Assembly: GCA_964234715.1 (NCBI GenBank)
Contig: OZ174283.1
From: Podarcis melisellensis
Lineage: Eukaryota
Reading direction: 5' to 3' (one strand)
Length of the DNA: 64,000 nt
Under the pieces are notes generated by a model. It saw nothing but the letters and a program-made list of their open reading frames with translations. It was not told the DNA's origin and ran no database searches. Both the position numbers and the translations under genes were made by a program. Each line of letters starts with the position of its first letter. The first letter of the stretch is position 1. Below are positions 9,222 to 49,639 of the stretch, piece by piece.

Positions 9222-9462
9222 TAAAGGGAAGTCAATGATTGGCATGGATGAGCAGAGCCTAGAACCCAGGAAATGTTCTATCCTGTAGCCTTGGATGAGA
9301 GATGATCGCATAGGGCAGCAACAGTTCTAGCACTCTGGATACTCCCAACACTTTTCCTCCCCCCTCTTCTTCACAGAGACAAATCTGACAAACATTCATT
9401 AGATATGAGAGCACAGAAAGCATCAGGTGTTTTGGGACAACTGTAACATAAGCAATATGAAT

Positions 9463-10268
9463 AGTTGTTATCTGTCTGGCTCAAGAGTCAATGGAGTGCA
9501 GCTCCGGGAATGAAGTCAAACTGCTGGAGAATCACAGCATCTGCTGTGACTGCAAGAGACCAGGAACTCGTAACTGCTGCTTCCTACATTGTTTTTGCTG
9601 CATTAGCAGCACCAAAGTGACCTCCTAGAGGCGCAAGCCTGGGCAGTGTGTATGGCGGTTGTGGCCTGCCCAGACGACAAGACCTCCTTTTTCGAAGGAA
9701 AGCAGAGCAATACATTTGGCACCAGCTTGACTGCAGGATTTGCTGGAAAGATGTGTATAAGGAGCCATGCAACCGCCTTAGGGTTAACTCCTCAGCCTTT
9801 TTTTCTCATGAAGATGTCCCTCAAGGCAGTGGGCATGGATTTTTCCTTCTAGCTTTGCTCCCAAAGCCTTTCTCATGAATGAATTTAGCCACAAGGTACC
9901 AGAGGTTTAGGATCAGAGCTTTCCTTCTCCTAGGTGGGCTGCCTTCCCAGGCTGACAAGCCCCATCTGCCCTTCACTTCCCATGACTGCATGTGCAGAAA
10001 CTGCATACAGGGGAAGTCTCTAACTCACTGAGGGTTTGAGACCCATTGGCTACCCTCAGCTGGTTTGCCAGCCAGCCGAAACTGTTTCCCAGGGAGTGGC
10101 TGCTGTCGCATGCTGACAGCTTCTATGAGCCACAGATGAGAGCTGAATGCAGGATGGGGACCAAAGGCGGACAAACTATCTCAGAAGGAGCATGACATGT
10201 CCTCAACCAAAAGTACTACCCCTCCCCTACCACCCCACAAACGCCAGTTTCCACACTGTGCAAACTGA
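9463..10268 (-). mobile_element. Non-autonomous RTE-clade element (RTE1/AviRTE-like 5'UTR fused to short 3' tail)
   Basis: Minus strand has the RTE 5'UTR motif GGCAGCCCACCTAGGAGAAGGAAAGCTCTGATCCTAAACC and ends CTCCATTGACTCTTGAGCCAGACAGATAACAAC; no ORF; flanked by CAATATGAAT at 9453-9462 and 10269-10278. Confidence 0.7.
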
Positions 10269-10279
10269 CAATATGAATT

Positions 10280-10565
10280 GTTGTTTAGTCATCCTAGTCG
10301 TGTTTGACTCTCTGTGACCCCATGAACCAGAGCATGCCTTGGAAACTTTCACCTTCTTCTCAAAGATTCTCCTTTTTTATGTCCATGGAGTTTTCTTGGC
10401 AAAATACTGGAGTGGTTTGCCAGTTCCTTCTCCAGGTGGATCACATTTAGTCTAAACTCTCGGCTATGACCTGTCCTTCTTGGGTGGCCCTGCACAGAAT
10501 AACTCATAGCTTCCTGGAGTTATTCAAGCCCCTTCACCACAACAAGGCAGTGATCTATGAAGAGG
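10280..10565 (-). mobile_element. Bipartite BovB derivative (BovB 5' end joined to BovB 3' end; Bov-A-like architecture)
   Basis: Minus strand: CTTCATAGATCACTGCCTTG...GGGCCACCCAAGA...GGAGAAGGAACTGGCAAACCACTCCAGTA (BovB 5'UTR), then CATGGGGTCACAGAGAGTCAAACACGACTA...AAACAAC (matches the BovB tail at 14910-14956); 13-bp TSD GACAATATGAATT (10267-10279, 10566-10578). Confidence 0.88.
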
Positions 10566-11219
10566 GACAATATGAATTAGAAGTTCTTAAAATATAAGCC
10601 AAATATAAACTCATATAGGTTCAATAACAATGTTGGTGTACAAAACTCGTAACAATATTTTTTTGAAGGCCATAAACTTCTGGGTTTCAGTTCCTTAGGC
10701 CCCCTTTATGCTGGCATGGAACAAACTGATTTAATATAGGTACATTTTGTTATTCACATTCACAGTATTTGCTTGCTACCCTAAGTGATTGCACTGATTG
10801 TATAAGCCAAAGCTTCGTTCACTTATTCAGAACATTGCTTTTTGATAACTGCACAAATGACACTGCCCAGTAATTGGATCTTTAGCTCATAGCTGCTTGT
10901 TATCCTGCACTCTTGTTTTACAGCATTACTTGTGTGGGTGTATAGCCAGAAATATTATTTTAATTCTTGGATAGAGATTGCCTTTGATGATTTTAATAGC
11001 AGCAGGACTGGTATCTTTATTAAAAACACCGCAGTACAGTAGAAACAGTTCTTTAGTACAATGATAATGATCCAGCTAAAATAGTCTATGCAGAACCCTA
11101 GCGAAGATACATTTTCCCTTGCAAAGCTGCATTATAACTTCATCAGTAGTACTACTATTTAATTGTAGCAAGTCACTGTACAAATGCACTGTGCAACTGC
11201 ATTAGCTCCCAGTAAAATT

Positions 11220-13161: not shown

Positions 13162-14454
13162 AACTGTTCTACAGCAGCACATACCTCTAGTGCTAGCCTA
13201 TCTTCCAAGACCCACCAGTACAATTGAAGTGGATCCTATCTATCCCCATCTAGCTGGCAAAAAGAGAGAGAGGATGTGGCAGCACTAGCATGATTCTTTA
13301 CCAGAGATTGCCCCATCCTGCCTCTCACTTCCACAAACCCATTCTCCAAGTAGTAGTGTCAATAGGACTTTGACAATTCATATGTCCCTTCACCAGCTGC
13401 TGAAAATCAGGCTCCGCAAACAGTTCTGTGGTTAATAATTAATTTTGAAATCTATTGCACAGCAAAGAAGGCTTCAATTCTTTTCTGAAGCTGAAAGAGA
13501 AGGATTGTTTGCTTAGAAACTTTTATCCTGTGGAAAATAAATGATCTACGGTAAAAGCTTTCTGACTTTTAATTTGTGCCAAACATATATTTCTTTCTGC
13601 ATTCTTTAGTTTCCCTAAAAAAAAAAGAGAGCAGAGGAGGTACCTTTTGAATGGGTGTTTGATTATTATTCTGGCAAAAGTGATTGAAATATGTTTTTTT
13701 AAAAAAAATCAGCATCAGTAGAATTTGAGGGAGGAGAAAAAGCAACTGTTCTTCTTTTGCATAATCTCAAATCCTGAATTATGTATTGTTTTCACAATTT
13801 TTGCCAATTTTTTAAATTAAAAAATCTATAAAATGTTGGTCTCATAGCAACTGGTCAGGCTTGCATGTGCTGACACATCTGTTTTCCTTGTTTGGGAAGT
13901 GGTTACATTTTTAGCTTTATTTCGTTTAAACAGCCTTGTTGTGAATGGGGAATCAATTTCAGGAGAGGGTGTGAAAGGCTTGTCCTGGAGTCTTTTTTGC
14001 AACAGATATCTCGGCAATTAGGGTCATAGGAAGCTGTCTTATGCCATTGATCCATTGGACTTGGTATTGCATGGTAGGAGACAGCAGGCTTCTGAATATC
14101 GTTAGCTGGAACCTGCAGGAGGGGAGACTGCTGTTGGACTCAGGTTCTGCTTACAGGCATCTGGTTGGCCACCCTGAGAACAGGCTACTGGATTAGATGC
14201 AGGGCTGTCCCATCTATTAGGCAAGGAGAGCCAGTGTGGTGTAGTGGTTAAGAGCGGTAGACTCGTAATCTGGTGAACCGGGTTCGCTTCCCCGCTCCTC
14301 CACATGCAGCTGTTTGGATGACCTTGGGCTAGTCACACTTCTCTGAAGTCTTTCAGTCTCACTCACCTCACAGAGTGTTTGTTGTGGGGGAGGAAGGGAA
14401 AGGAGAATGTTAGCCGCTTTGAGACTCCTTTGGGTAATGATAAAGCGGGATATC

Positions 14455-14956
14455 TAGACAGCATCTTGAGAAGTAGAGACATCACCTTGCCAACAAAGGT
14501 TCGTATAGTTAAAGCTATGGTTTTCCCAGTAGTGATGTATGGAAGTGAGAGCTGGACCATAAAGAAGGCTGATCGCCGAAGAATTGATGCTTTTGAATTA
14601 TGGTGCTGGAGGAGACTCTTGAGAGTCCCATGGACTGCAAGAAGATCAAACCTCTCCATACTGAAGGAAATCAACCCTGAGTGCTCACTGGAAGGACAGA
14701 TTGTGAAGCTGAGGCTCCAGTACTTTGGCCCCCTCATGAGAAGAGAAGACTCCCTGGAGAAGACCCTGATGTTGGGAAAGATGGAGGGCACAAGGAGAAG
14801 GGGGCGACAGAGGACGAGATGGCTGGATAGTGTTTTCGAGGTTACCAGCATGAGTTTGACCAAACTGCGGGAGGCAGTGGAGGACAGAGGTGCCTGGCGT
14901 TCTCTGGTCCATGGGGTCACGAAGAGTCGGACACGACTAAACGACTAAACAACAAC
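14455..14956 (+). mobile_element. BovB (RTE-clade LINE), 5'-truncated 3' fragment with intact reading frame
   Basis: LDSILRSRDITLPTKVRIVKAMVFPVVMYGSESWTIKKADRRRIDAFELWCWRRLLRVPWTARRSN...HGVTKSRTRLND is the BovB ORF C-terminus; (CAA)n tail; perfect 13-bp TSD AAAGCGGGATATC (14442-14454, 14957-14969). Confidence 0.97.
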
Positions 14957-14978
14957 AAAGCGGGATATCCAATCCAAA

Positions 14979-15065
14979 CTCCTCCTCCTCCTCCTCCTCC
15001 TCCTCCTCCTCCTCCTCTTCTTCTTCTTCTTCTTCTTCTTCTTCTTCTTCTTCTTCTTCTTCTTC
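14979..15065. repeat. Compound (CCT)n(CTT)n microsatellite
   Basis: Seen directly; forms the SINE tail. Confidence 0.97.
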
Positions 15066-23180: not shown

Positions 23181-25927
23181 GCTAGGCTGGCCCCCTTCTG
23201 TGTTTTTTGTTTTGTTTGGCCACTAACTGGCTGTTGGCCCAGGATCTCTTAATAGTAAATGTTATATATTTTATTCTCCTCTTGCTGTGGTGTGTTGACC
23301 TTGAACCCTTCTCCCAAGGATAATGTGTGTTGTTTTTCAGCCCCCTGGATATGATAGGTATGCTTGCCATTGTGCACTGTGCTCCAAATCAGTGCTTGTG
23401 AGTGGCACAAGAGAATCTGAACCCTTGCCTGAAGGGATGCCTGAGAACCTGTAGAAGTGGGGCTGTTGCCGGTTGTGCCACTGGGTTTGATCAACTGGGA
23501 GATGGGGCGTGGTGACATCACTGGATATGCTGTGGTGAAGGGAGTGTGCTGGGGGCATGTTCTCACCACTGTGACTTCATTGGCTCAATCCATGTACGAG
23601 GGGCATGTCAGGGCTGGTACAGGCTCTTGTTGGTGGGCACTGGAAGTTTTTCCAGGGATGCTGTGGGGGGGGTACCTGCCATTTTTTGTTGGTTGTATGA
23701 TTTCCCCCTTCGCTCTCATGCTGAGCAAGCATAGGATATGTAGTCATTCCCTTGATGCAGTGTCAGTGTCTCCCTCCACCTCCACCCTCCTGCCGCCTTG
23801 GTGTAGCTAATGTGTAGGATTGCTCTGTTAGTTACATAAATACAATTTACAAATAGTCCAGTAGACAGCATTACTTGATTCCAGACATGAGCTAAAATTC
23901 AGCACTGGCCATACATGTTAATTTCAGTGGTGCTATCTTGGGAATATGTTGTCTTACCGTGTATTACAGATTCTAACATTTTAAGTCTAAAATCACTGCG
24001 TATAAATAAAATATGCATCTGGTAGCGCTGCAGAGATGAAGGGATTCCCCCCCCCACCCTTAAGAAACAGACAGCTAAAAGTAATTTTCTAATGCTATTC
24101 ATTATACAACACTCAGGACATGGAATATGTATCATGCACTTCTTATTGCAAGAGAGAGAAAAGCAAAGCAAAGAAAACGTTATTTTGGGTTGCATTAGCA
24201 ATAACTATTCTACATGGTACAAATATGCCCAGTTTGAGGTCTCACATTTCAATAACATTGTTAGCTTTTACATAAGGATGAACATCCTCCACTTAATGTT
24301 TGTTATTATCACATTACAGAATGCATTAAACCTGCAAAAGCCATTAGCTTCCACATGTTGGACAGTATTGCTCACATTCAAACGTATCCTGGAAATCTGC
24401 AAGTAGAACATACAAAGCATTGTGTAACATCAAGATCCCCTTTGGAAGTATAGCAAGATTTCAGTGTTGAACCAACTAGTGAGAAACACTTCCATGCATG
24501 CAAATCCACTATCCAAGTAATGACTACCCAAAGGTCTGTAGGTGCAACATTCCAAACTGGCAGAAAGGGTTTTTCATTGTATGCACTGCCATGGTCTGAT
24601 AATTGTCTACCAGTCTTTGTAGACGAAGACTTGTCTCAATAGACTCAGCAGCAGGACTGATCAGCAAATGGGCATGCAACAATCAGGGAAATTGTCAAAC
24701 ATTTAAATTTGCTTTAGTCCTTGGTCTTTTGATGTATAAAACACCAAAGTATGAATATGAATGAATATGAATAAAAAGATAAATGGATGAGTGGATAGAT
24801 GGAAAAGATGCTTCTCCCTTCTCTTACATTAAATGGGTTCTATGTGTCTCACTGTGCCTAAAATCAGGGGTCTTTTGGAGTAGTGGAAGATTAGTAGTGA
24901 AGCATACTGCTGATTCTGAGATGGGGCTCAGTCTTAACAGAGTCATTTATCTTGTATGACACTGGTCTTGTTCTCTAAGCATCTAAAGATTTCAACTTGA
25001 TGTGACTTCTAGCTAAAACACCCCTAATGTGTCCATTTGCGTCCTGCACCACAGCGGTTGCAATCTTTGCTTGCTCTTTTATTTTCCATCGTCCACCTCT
25101 GCCGATGCATTGTCTGATTGAAGATGCCGCTTAGCTAAAACAGCCATTATAGTATGAGCCTCAGCAATATCTAGCATACTGGAAAATGGATTCTGCAACA
25201 ATGCTGCTAGCACTTTAGTTTCCCCTGGGAAAGCAAAAAAGAGGCTTTAAATGACCAAAGAATAGTCAAGTTGAGGGTCACAGGGTAATTGGAAAGTCCT
25301 CTAGTGTGATTGTTCCATGGGGAGTACGGAGAGTAGCAATGGCTATTTGCATTAACTTTATTTTAAGTTCTCCAGTGTCCTTATTTCTTTAGTAACAAGG
25401 TCAAAAGTTGATTGGTAGCCAACATACTAAAATTTTACAAAACTACATACCCTTTGATGTTACCTGTAAGCATTGATTTTAAAAACCATTTCCAGGTTCC
25501 AAGAGTCCTAATGTTAGCACTTTAGGCTGCTAATGCTTTGGGTAAATATTCTGCATAAATATTCATGGGGGGAATGCAGGAGCTTAACAACCAGCAACAG
25601 CTGCAGGTTGAAGCTGAATGACATTTTGATTGGCAATTGAATCAAAGATTGGCTCCAAAGACCTATCCTCAGTTTCAGGTGTAATTGTAATGGAGCAGTG
25701 TTATTGTGGCTATTCTGTAGCATAAGTAAGCCATGCACTCTGTATATGCTTAAAATTGCTATCATTTCCTGCTCCTTCATATATTCCAAGGCTGATCTTC
25801 AACACTGATAATTAGCTCTGGGGCTAATGTCTGCTTATTCCTGGTTCATGCTACTATGCCAACCTACATTCCCCCCGAAATTTCTAGTAACAGGTTTTTG
25901 AAAAAAAATACAGGGAGTTATTCCTTA

Positions 25928-32354: not shown

Positions 32355-33329
32355 AATACCTGTGGCCCCAAGAACCAGTAGCCCAAACTATATTTGCACT
32401 CAATCTCTCCCCTGATAAAAAAACAAGAAATGGAATTGAAATCATACGGAAGATTGTTCATTAAATGGGCCTGTGGTGCAAGATATAATGGCTCTCTAGA
32501 TTTAGCGTATCATACTTCCTCAAGATATCCATTTTTCCAGTTCTGTAATATTTTTATATTTACTATAAACATTCACCTACCAGACTGAAAATGTTATTTA
32601 CTAAACCCCATTGAAACAGGCCTATTGTGATAGCCTCCTTGAATAATTTTTGGGTAAAGTCAGGTTATTCTCACTTTGCTTCCTTTTCTTCTTTACCTCA
32701 AACAACGAACAATGCAAGCGTAACTTGTTGGCAATGATAGACGACGTCAAACATTTCTGTACCCTGAACACATTTATTTTCTGAAAGGGAATTTGCTTTC
32801 AACCACCAGTATCCATTTCTTGAAATATGAAATCCCTTATTGTGAGGACACTGTACCCTCCTGACTCATCTTATGCAACCTATTCCAGCTTATTTCCTTT
32901 ATATGCTTCAGCCCAAGTTTTATACCTTGTAATTATGTGTGTTGTTATATCAAGAATGGATGTAACTATTCATTTTGACAGTCTAATAAGGTGTGGGACC
33001 ACAAGACCCACCAAATTTATAATTTTATAGAATATTTTACCACCCTGGGTAGTCATAAATAGAAACATAGGCCACCGAAATCTACAGCTTCTTTATAAAA
33101 TTGCTCCCGGTGATGGAAAAGAAGCAGCGCTTGAAACTCTTAATATTTGTTCAGTGTACCTAACCTCTGCAAGTGCAACAATTGCTAACAATGCTTAAGA
33201 AAATAAAAAGGCGATTCAAAACTGTAATATCTGATTTTTAATCAAAGTATCATTTTTTTTCATTCCCACTCCCATTACCATTATCTCTCACCTTTCCTCT
33301 AAAGAGTTTGAGGTGTCCTGCCTTCCCCC

Positions 33330-37688: not shown

Positions 37689-39258
37689 ATTGTGTTGAGA
37701 TATGTGGTTAGTTAATCCTATATTACTCACACAGGTCATGACAATGTAATTTCAACCATTCTGTAAGACCCATTAAACTCAATGGGCCAGACTCAACTAG
37801 CGGGAGCCAGCACAGTGAGTCCTCCCTCTGTGCCCCCCCCCAATCCTCTCTGCGAGATTTTATTATGAGAAGTGGGGGGAGAGGGGAGATCGTTGCATTA
37901 GGGAAGCAGAAATTCTTGCACTGATTGAACATTTGCCTTAGCATGATGTTGCATCCCACCCAATGGGGCTTACTATTGAGTAAACATCTATATGACGGCA
38001 CTGCAAGTATTGCTTTGCAGGCACAAATGCCATCTTTTTCTGTATCGGCATCATGAACTACAACTGACCTCAAAGGAAAATATAACCAAAGACAATCCTG
38101 TCATCTCCCTAAAGACCTTTCTGATACCCATCCATCTTCCACAAAACTACTTTGTCTTTTATAATGATGCCTCCCTATTCCATTATTTCTGCACTGGGCT
38201 TTAGAGCATTGTTCTCCCCTCTTAGCTCGCTCCCTTTGGGACAGCAGGGACCAGTAACTTGCTTGGCATATCTTTCCTGCTAAATACAGAACTGTGTGCT
38301 GCCTACAGCAATCTATCAATAATTCACTATTAATAATAAAAGCACGGAACTCTTCTACTGTATGACTGCTTGGTTTAAGTCCCTTAACTTTGTGAAGATG
38401 TTTTGGCTCATATTAGGAAACCACAGAGAATCAAACTGACAAGTTAAATGCATTGATAATTTGATAGCTCAATATTAATTGCTAAGGGCTGGATTAGAGT
38501 CCCAAGGACATTGTTCATTGTAATGGGAGGGAAATTGCTAGCGAGCCACAATGAAATTTAAATTTATGCTCCACTGTTTGTGACAAGAATAAACTACCGA
38601 GCCTGATTGGTTCCCTGAGTCTTCCTGAGTCTGATTGGTTACCTGCAAATAAGGGAGAGATAGCTGCATGCAGGGACAGCTTGATAGCCAAACCCTTTCC
38701 TACTGAAGTTCAGGACTTGTTGGAGGGGAAGGTCCTGCAAAGTATCATTCAGTACTTGCCACCAACAGCGCTGAGCAGGGCAACAGCAGCATCACTGTGG
38801 TCTGCAACAGGTGTCTGCATATCATCCACCATTTTGACATCCCCAATATTCCCTGACACACTGTCAATTTGGTGCATAGAAGAATGTCAAAATGGTGACT
38901 TCCTACCAGGATACTGCAACTGCTCAATACATTTGAGCTAAAATGTGGAGGCAGGTGAGTGCTCAAGTGTTGGTGGACCTGTAGCAGCTGCCTAGTCATT
39001 CTTCTGCTGGTTCCTGCTAAGTATGATTCAGGCCCTTTTTCAGGCATGGAGGTGTAATGGCACCCCCAGCTGCATCCTGGGTCCTGTGTCATGTGGGGAA
39101 GGAAGATCTGGTCAAACAAAATGTCCCATTCTGTTCATTCACCCCTTCTGGTTAAGAACTTTCTGCCACCAGGTTCTCCTCCTTTGTCTGAGACTCTCCC
39201 CTGATCTGCAAGCCAAAGCAAGTCACTGACTAGGTTGTAAATAATAGTAATTCACAGC

Positions 39259-45409: not shown

Positions 45410-45617
45410 CAGGGGTGTCCAAACTTTTTTCAAAGAGGGCCAGATTTGATGAAGTGAACATGTGTGAGGGCCGACCAAAGTTGTTAAGCTTAGGGTTGAA
45501 GTTGCTGAGCTTTTTTTGGGGGGGGGATTTTACACCAGGACTTTTACTGACACGGGGGCAAGATTAAATTGGTGGTGGGCCGAATTAGGCCCCCAGGACA
45601 GACTTTGGGCATGCCTG
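45410..45617. mobile_element. hAT MITE (Charlie-like)
   Basis: TIRs CAGGGGTGTCCAAA / TTTGGGCATGCCTG; TSD CTCTAAAG / CTCTGAAG. Confidence 0.88.
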
Positions 45618-48566: not shown

Positions 48567-49639
48567 AAAATACTGACCTTCGTCAAGATTGATTTTCAGG
48601 GGAATTTATGAGATCCAAAACAAGACATATACCCCAAACCACAAATAAACGAACAGACAATCAAAGAACAGACAATGAGCTCAATAGTATTTTACAAGCC
48701 TGAGCAAATAACAATGGGTTAAAAGAAAGCAACATTAGAACCTATTGCTTTCCCATGTTACTATTTTTATTCAGTCGTGGTCAGCAGGGGAGGTGGAGCC
48801 TACCTGACTTCCCATTACTAGCACTGCTCTAGCTTAGTGGGAGGCAGGAAAGCAAGGTGGCACTGAGGTCAGCACAGTGCAAATGCACCAGCAGAGCCAA
48901 TCTGGTGCTTCCAATGGTGCATTTTAACCATGGCATCTTCACCACCACTTTGCCCTGTCCCTCTTGGTATGCTGCAGTGACACTGGTGACAAGAGATCAA
49001 GTAAGCACTGCTTCCCACTACAGTTAGTATCTCCCCCCACCCCCCGCAACTGCCCTTTGTCTGAAGGGAGTCCCACCTCTTGTTGATGGGACCACAAATA
49101 GGGCCTTCCTTGTAGTTCTCAGAACTCAGGTCAGCAGATATCTGGGGAGGTACTTCCTCAAGTACTTGGATCCCAAGTCATTTAGGGCTTTATACAGTAC
49201 AGAACACACTGAATTAGGCCAATGCAGCTCTTTAAGAAGTGGTAAAATGTGACCCCATTATTTCTTTCTTCCTTTCTTATTTCATCTCATTTCTAAATTG
49301 CCCTTCCTTCCAGGGGATCCCAGAACAACGTACATTCAAAAGTAAAAATGCATCGCACAAATAAAAATAGCAATAAACAAACAGAACTGTAAAATATCCA
49401 TAAAAATCAACGCCATTAAAACTGACAAATACAGCAGTGAGATATTGAAATAAGCTAAACCTCACTTTGTAAAAACCCGAGAAAACAAAAATGTCAAATT
49501 ATGTCTGAACATGGGAAGTGGACAGATGGATCTCCAAGGGCAGGGCATTCAGATGTTGGGGTGCTACAACAGAGAAGAAACTACTTTGCATCCCCATACC
49601 ATGAATCCTCATGGGAATCATGAGCCGATTCCCACCCAT

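Follow-up and report, generated by a model that had tools for sequence, protein, structure and literature searches.

Our analysis suggests that intact BovB retrotransposons carry a genuine HDV-like self-cleaving ribozyme of ~129 nt at their 5′ terminus. We put the probability of this at roughly 0.6; it draws on comparison of BovB copies and on folding models, with catalysis inferred from the fold. The candidate was found in the window, the 64,000-nucleotide stretch of lizard DNA that was analysed, where it occupies positions 10437-10565 of the minus strand (element nt 1-129), with proposed cleavage just 5′ of C1 (10565). The original prediction had drawn a ribozyme of 72 bases at the 5′ end of a BovB-derived mini-element. 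The minus-strand sequence is exactly as quoted there. The HDV-type fold extends over ~129 nt, and the flagged bases would be the first half of this candidate ribozyme at the conserved BovB 5′ terminus.

The BovB element and its 5′ end

The candidate stands at the head of a 286-bp element (10280-10565, minus strand) that is bracketed by a perfect 13-nt target-site duplication (TSD), AATTCATATTGTC as read on the minus strand. The 5′ copy of the duplication lies at 10566-10578 and the identical 3′ copy at 10267-10279, both given for the minus strand. This sets the first element base at 10565; position 10566, which had been taken as the 5′ end, still belongs to the TSD as its final base. Element nucleotides are numbered such that the window coordinate equals 10566 minus the element nucleotide. 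The HDV-type fold starts at the base set by the TSD, and the earlier statement that the element begins at P1 nucleotide 1 therefore holds.

The element consists of a 5′ UTR part (~nt 1-205) and a BovB 3′ tail (~nt 228-286; 10280-10338, minus strand). Its first ~185 to 205 nt match seven metagenome contigs from Ga0126362. The last ~60 nt are BovB tail, which terminates in an AAC-type repeat and shows 83.6% identity to the tail of a truncated BovB copy at 14896-14955. No ORF of at least 120 aa is present in the 286 bp, and the mini-element occurs once within the window. Judged by this make-up, the lizard element is an internally deleted, non-coding BovB, that is, an RTE-clade LINE whose 5′ UTR has been joined to its 3′ tail. 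Since the BovB 5′ UTR is fused directly to the BovB 3′ tail, it can be classed as a bipartite non-autonomous LINE, in agreement with its earlier description as a BovB-derived mini-element.

Other repeats were also seen in the window. The truncated BovB copy mentioned above (14455-14957, plus strand) is an ordinary 5′-truncated insertion with its own TSD, AAAGCGGGATATC, at ~14441-14454 and 14958-14971. It retains an open 164-aa C-terminus of ORF2, to which the protein XP_053246417.1 of Podarcis raffonei is 95% identical; this places the genome in a lacertid lizard or near kin. A (CCT)n run (~14975-15020) lies immediately downstream. A second short element, unrelated to the first, adjoins the 3′ TSD copy (9453-10266, minus strand) and terminates in a third, imperfect copy of the target, ATTCATATTG, at ~9453-9462.

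Related copies were sought by a metagenome pattern scan with a 16-mer from element nt 73-88. The scan returned 120 loci, of which seven are BovB, all from Ga0126362; two other loci from this sample (L008 and L063) were left out because the 16-mer is a chance occurrence in their GC-rich host DNA. The BovB contigs of Ga0126362 are host contamination. Pattern scans of genome contigs and viral contigs and a protein-guided scan of viral contigs gave chance matches only, and a protein search with the C-terminus of BovB ORF2 returned short fragments that did not reach 5′ ends. The comparative set thus consists of one lizard copy and six to seven bovid-type copies, and the fold alignment holds seven sequences. 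A 129-nt bovid-type majority sequence was computed solely for the comparison of fold energies, and a full-length element was not assembled.

In five bovid-type copies (L010, L057, L074, L075 and L103), the alignment to the lizard copy starts at base 1, and in a sixth (L089) at base 3. The flanks upstream of these six copies are related neither to one another nor to that of the lizard element. The pattern at nt 73-88 could have sampled truncations anywhere in nt 2-72, and none turned up. Scattered 5′ ends had been named beforehand as an observation that would speak against a ribozyme; the six copies instead share one start. As six independent copies begin there with unrelated sequence upstream, the 5′ end belongs to the family. 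On this alignment, base 1 is where the family as a whole starts, in both BovB lineages, and not a random truncation. In the seventh copy (L005), the sequence continues from nt ~66 into an ORF. Homologues of this ORF contain the endonuclease domains PF03372 and PF14529; a word search named such homologues from Bos mutus and Ovis aries. When the L005 endonuclease ORF was searched by sequence against Pfam and PDB, there was no match. Since this copy leads into an endonuclease ORF, nt 1 to ~360 can be assigned to the BovB 5′ UTR.

Among the seven bovid-type 5′ ends, five (L057, L074, L075, L089 and L103) lose mutual homology after only 160-200 nt. One of them, L074, then resumes in what we take to be the BovB endonuclease region. 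Short BovB fragments, either restricted to the 5′ end or internally deleted, seem to be common in the Ga0126362 host too. In another contig (L010:680-1060), the BovB 5′ UTR copy is broken at ~nt 415 by a TA/CA microsatellite, which is followed by a second repeat. The head of this repeat resembles that of the Bov-tA/Bov-A2 SINEs, which fits a ruminant host of the contaminating DNA.

Predicted fold of the first 129 nucleotides

The first 129 nt of the element can be arranged in the segment order P1, J1/2, P2, P3, L3, P3′, P1′, P1.1, P4, J4/2, P2′, which is that of a nested double pseudoknot (all positions below are on the minus strand). P1 is formed by CCTCTTC (nt 1-7; 10559-10565) and GAAGGGG (nt 31-37; 10529-10535) and has seven pairs, one of them G-U. 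Starting from the TSD-defined base 1, 71-93% of P1 cells are paired in the seven copies. The C1-G37 pair is found in five of the seven sequences (the lizard and four of six bovid-type copies), and the G1-U37 wobble of HDV and CPEB3 is absent. P3, made of GCC (nt 18-20; 10546-10548) and GGT (nt 28-30; 10536-10538), has 3 bp with one G-U. It closes the 7-nt L3 UUGUUGU (TTGTTGT in the DNA; nt 21-27; 10539-10545), in which the HDV-type feature of a U at position 1 and a G at position 6 is present. Positions 5-6 of L3 read TG, CA or CG in the bovid-type copies. From their sequences, the variation of L3 and P3 among copies fits CpG decay from an ancestral UUGUCGU and GCC/GGC. P1, J1/2, the 5′ strand of P2, P3 and L3 had all been drawn in this way before, and the relatives retain P1, the P2 5′ strand, P3 and L3; J1/2 in the 129-nt layout is the unpaired A8.

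The original prediction regarded P1.1 as not obvious. One candidate pair was found, G23 (10543) with C38 (10528), and it is kept in all seven copies, once as G-U. The second position is U-U in every copy, and the polarity of the single pair is reversed relative to HDV.

The P2 5′ strand, TAGATCAC (nt 9-16; 10550-10557), finds a long-range partner in GTGATCCA (nt 122-129; 10437-10444), which is retained in the relatives. In the lizard copy, GTGATC (nt 122-127) is the perfect complement of the GATCAC core (nt 11-16), giving six perfect Watson-Crick pairs plus U9-A129, with A10 mismatched. The bovid-type P2 has 8 bp, UGGAUCAC/GUGGUCCA. Between P1′ and J4/2 lies a P4 domain of 77 nt (nt 39-115; 10451-10527). 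It comprises a pairing UUG/..GA that adjoins the junction, a conserved helix AACTC/GAGTT (nt 45-49/107-111) and a helix GCTATGA/TCATAGC (nt 56-62/97-103), which reads GCUAUGA/UCAUAGY across copies. The competing perfect 9-bp hairpin noted earlier is indeed present within this domain, in the lizard copy only. J4/2 is CTAAAT (nt 116-121; 10445-10450), and its C116 (10450) is the candidate catalytic cytosine. A cytosine is found here in six of the seven copies, followed by UAAAU in the lizard or AAAAY in the bovid type, and the A-rich J4/2 lies beside P2′.

The compact 72-nt fold that was first proposed pairs GATCACT with AGTTATT as P2, uses CTT/AAG as a 3-bp P4 and places the catalytic C in CTATG. 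In the lizard copy, its P2 pairs at six of seven positions and its P4 at all three. The relatives argue against it, since all six bovid-type copies have AGCCATG as the P2 3′ strand and only 44.9% of P2 cells are paired in them, making AGTTATT a property of the lizard copy only. Similarly, CTT/AAG is not kept in the relatives and is replaced by the 77-nt P4. The cytosine of CTATG sits inside the conserved P4 helix GCUAUGA/UCAUAGY, CUAU falls outside the C-N-purine-A pattern, and the long-range P2 of the lizard copy is the stronger one. It is therefore very improbable that the compact fold is the ribozyme, and C116 takes over as the candidate catalytic base.

Across the seven sequences, 86.6% of cells are paired in the 129-nt layout, compared with 35-41% when partners are slid; by helix, the values are 85.7% for P2 and 100% for both P1.1 and the P4 helix AACUC/GAGUU. 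The long-range P2 was recovered unaided by RNAalifold and by single-sequence MFE folds. Forcing P1 and P3 in a nested model costs 7-9 kcal/mol, and we estimate that the pseudoknotted P2 would roughly repay this cost.

The HDV-fold descriptor check suggested with the original prediction was carried out with a strict and a loose version. In the strict version, P1 had to be a perfect 7-bp helix, P3 had to have 3 bp, and L3 had to contain the U and the G; P1.1 needed one Watson-Crick pair, P2 a perfect helix of 6 bp or more, and C-N-purine-A had to lie no further than 2 nt from P2′. This version matched once in 128 kb (both strands of the window), at 10565, which is base 1 of the element, and gave a mean of 0.15 matches per window on 40 shuffles; as both descriptors were written after the candidate had been seen, these figures flatter it. 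The loose version matched 16 positions in eight places on both strands, or ~1 in 10,000 positions, including 10565-10567. The other loose matches lie at 37843-37846 and 45492-45498 on the plus strand and at 48667, 32433-32438, 24083-24084, 6549 and 2382 on the minus strand. They are taken as chance background, and none satisfies the strict version. The 5′ end of the neighboring 9453-10266 element matched neither descriptor. Even after a large discount, it is unlikely that a match would land exactly on the element start by chance, and the 129-nt HDV-type layout exceeds chance.

Catalytic and non-catalytic readings

It could be proposed that the helices are chance complementarity in an ordinary BovB copy whose 5′ end arose by random truncation. 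Most LINE copies are 5′-truncated, as is the BovB at 14455-14957; the 77-nt stretch by itself folds no better than shuffles (z = -1.39), and the loose descriptor finds eight places in the window. Against this, six independent copies from another lineage begin at the same base, the element and the BovB 5′ UTR run colinear from base 1, and the strict match is unique. The likelihood of such a truncation is even smaller than that of the compact fold, and both are effectively excluded.

A more serious alternative is that the first ~130 nt form a non-catalytic 5′ UTR module, for example one that acts as an internal Pol II promoter, as an RNA structure serving translation or RNP assembly, or in both ways. 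In that case the fixed end would be the transcription start and the HDV-type layout a coincidence. A fixed 5′ end would be equally expected from an internal promoter, as any LINE with such a promoter should have one. The pairing itself is a pattern of conservation and not of covariation, because the copies are close relatives decaying neutrally. No pair is altered on both sides among the seven closely related, neutrally decaying copies, and compensatory changes did not exceed the shuffle control. The bovid-type copies, which for the most part conform to the layout, are old and have one to three broken pairs each, none being individually intact, and selection is readable solely from the differences between lizard and bovid. 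At paired sites there are five such differences, all single transitions; four still allow pairing and one (A10) does not, which is no better than chance. Further, conservation of the core does not exceed that of the adjacent UTR: between lizard and bovid types it is 85% and 78% in the candidate ribozyme core and 80% in the UTR just downstream. No model of the Rfam HDV clan, including those of HDV and CPEB3, matched at E≤10 in 10200-10700 or in the six bovid-type copies, and a whole-window scan at the gathering score gave no HDV-clan match; these models include no pseudoknots and are built for a short P4. Either way, a promoter function is plausible, as the 77 nt of L1Tc serve as both promoter and ribozyme (PMC3185411).

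What speaks against a purely non-catalytic module is that the strict descriptor is unique in 128 kb and falls exactly on base 1. Lengths and positions are canonical throughout, with P1 at 1-7/31-37, P3′ at 28-30, a 7-nt L3 and a C with an A-rich J4/2 beside P2′. In addition, RTE elements are described as being without their own promoter (PMC6765202). On balance, we consider a non-catalytic module possible but rather unlikely. The ribozyme and promoter readings are, on our analysis, not mutually exclusive, since the same 77 nt do both in L1Tc.

Based on these observations, we favor a ribozyme at the BovB 5′ terminus and propose the following mechanism. Host transcription would read through into BovB, and the resulting BovB RNA would fold into the double pseudoknot. 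With C116 acting as the general acid, the RNA would cut itself just 5′ of C1. The cut would give the RNA a fixed 5′ end, which target-primed reverse transcription could copy into every full-length insertion. A deletion derivative that retains the ribozyme and the 3′ tail recognised by the BovB reverse transcriptase could be processed likewise and mobilised in trans. Catalysis, co-transcription and activity of this decayed copy are the parts that we infer. Even with a genuine ribozyme in the family, this lizard copy may lack activity, given its U3-G35, the mismatched A10 and U25 in L3.

Known HDV-like ribozymes and meaning for BovB

In the genomic HDV and mammalian CPEB3 ribozymes, P1 spans 1-7/31-37, P3 has 3 bp and L3 has 7 nt with U...CG, and these lengths are as in the BovB candidate. 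Unlike the candidate, both begin with the G1-U37 wobble and have a C(L3)-G pair in P1.1. P1.1 consists of two pairs in HDV, and that of CPEB3 is also weak.

The L1Tc ribozyme is active. It cleaves at C1; its P1 spans 1-7/31-37, the basal pairs being G-C, and its P1.1 is a single pair (PMC3185411; the P1 extent was read from primer sequences in that paper). Like the BovB candidate, it occupies the first bases of a non-LTR retrotransposon, starts at C1 and combines a 3-bp P3 with a one-pair P1.1, although one or two pairs are given for P1.1 of L1TcRz (PMC3185411). Since an active ribozyme also starts at C1, the G-U wobble is not universal. The non-autonomous derivative of L1Tc, NARTc, keeps the same 5′ end, just as the lizard mini-element keeps that of BovB. 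The two systems differ in LINE clade and host, and L1TcRz has 77 nt with a short P4, whereas the BovB candidate has ~129 nt with a 77-nt P4. The activity of L1TcRz is experimental, and that of the BovB candidate is predicted.

HDV-like ribozymes in the RTE clade are already established, and BovB would add one more. RTE and Baggins elements carry such ribozymes according to the account in PMC6765202, which presents RTE elements as lacking their own promoters. As cited in PMC6765202 and PMC5786205, these ribozymes (Ruminski et al. 2011) share with the BovB candidate the clade (RTE), the 5′-terminal position and a proposed release of the promoter-less element from a co-transcript. As far as these two citing papers describe them, the BovB core differs from them in C1-G37 and the reversed one-pair P1.1. 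No link between BovB and a ribozyme was found in the literature searched, with Ruminski et al. 2011 outside its reach. R2 ribozymes share the double-pseudoknot layout: their P1 has 6-7 bp, P2 at least 5 bp and P3 3 bp, P4 varies widely, and few bases other than the catalytic C are invariant (PMC3774820). However, R2 inserts specifically into 28S rDNA, frequently cleaves further upstream, within the rRNA, and has a J1/4 of 0-2 nt (PMC3774820), whereas BovB is dispersed.

Bipartite non-autonomous elements are a known type for RTE, Ingi and R2, and those of RTE retain the 5′ end of their parent, possibly owing to a ribozyme (PMC5786205). In Bov-A, WALLSI3, RTESINE2, NARTc and RIME, the 5′ and 3′ ends of the parent are joined, there is no ORF, mobilisation occurs in trans and the true 5′ terminus is kept, as in the lizard element (PMC5786205). 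In contrast to these families, the lizard element is known from a single copy.

Taken together, fold models and these likenesses leave the chances evenly balanced that BovB has an active ribozyme of an L1Tc-like variant type, with C1-G37, a reversed one-pair P1.1 and a 77-nt P4, that is present in many unannotated vertebrate copies and explains both the precise 5′ ends and the Bov-A-like derivatives. If active, it would be a self-cleaving ribozyme carried by BovB, which is among the best-known vertebrate retrotransposons spread by horizontal transfer. It would also provide a mechanism by which read-through transcription from the host could yield RNA of a promoter-poor RTE element with a defined 5′ end, and it would account for internally deleted derivatives keeping the extreme 5′ end. 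Intronic copies on the sense strand could then cut host pre-mRNAs. Finally, a core with C1-G37, a reversed one-pair P1.1 and a long P4 is of a type that current ribozyme searches may miss. If the reading is true, a BovB variant has been overlooked by standard descriptors and Rfam models in an element that fills squamate and ruminant genomes.
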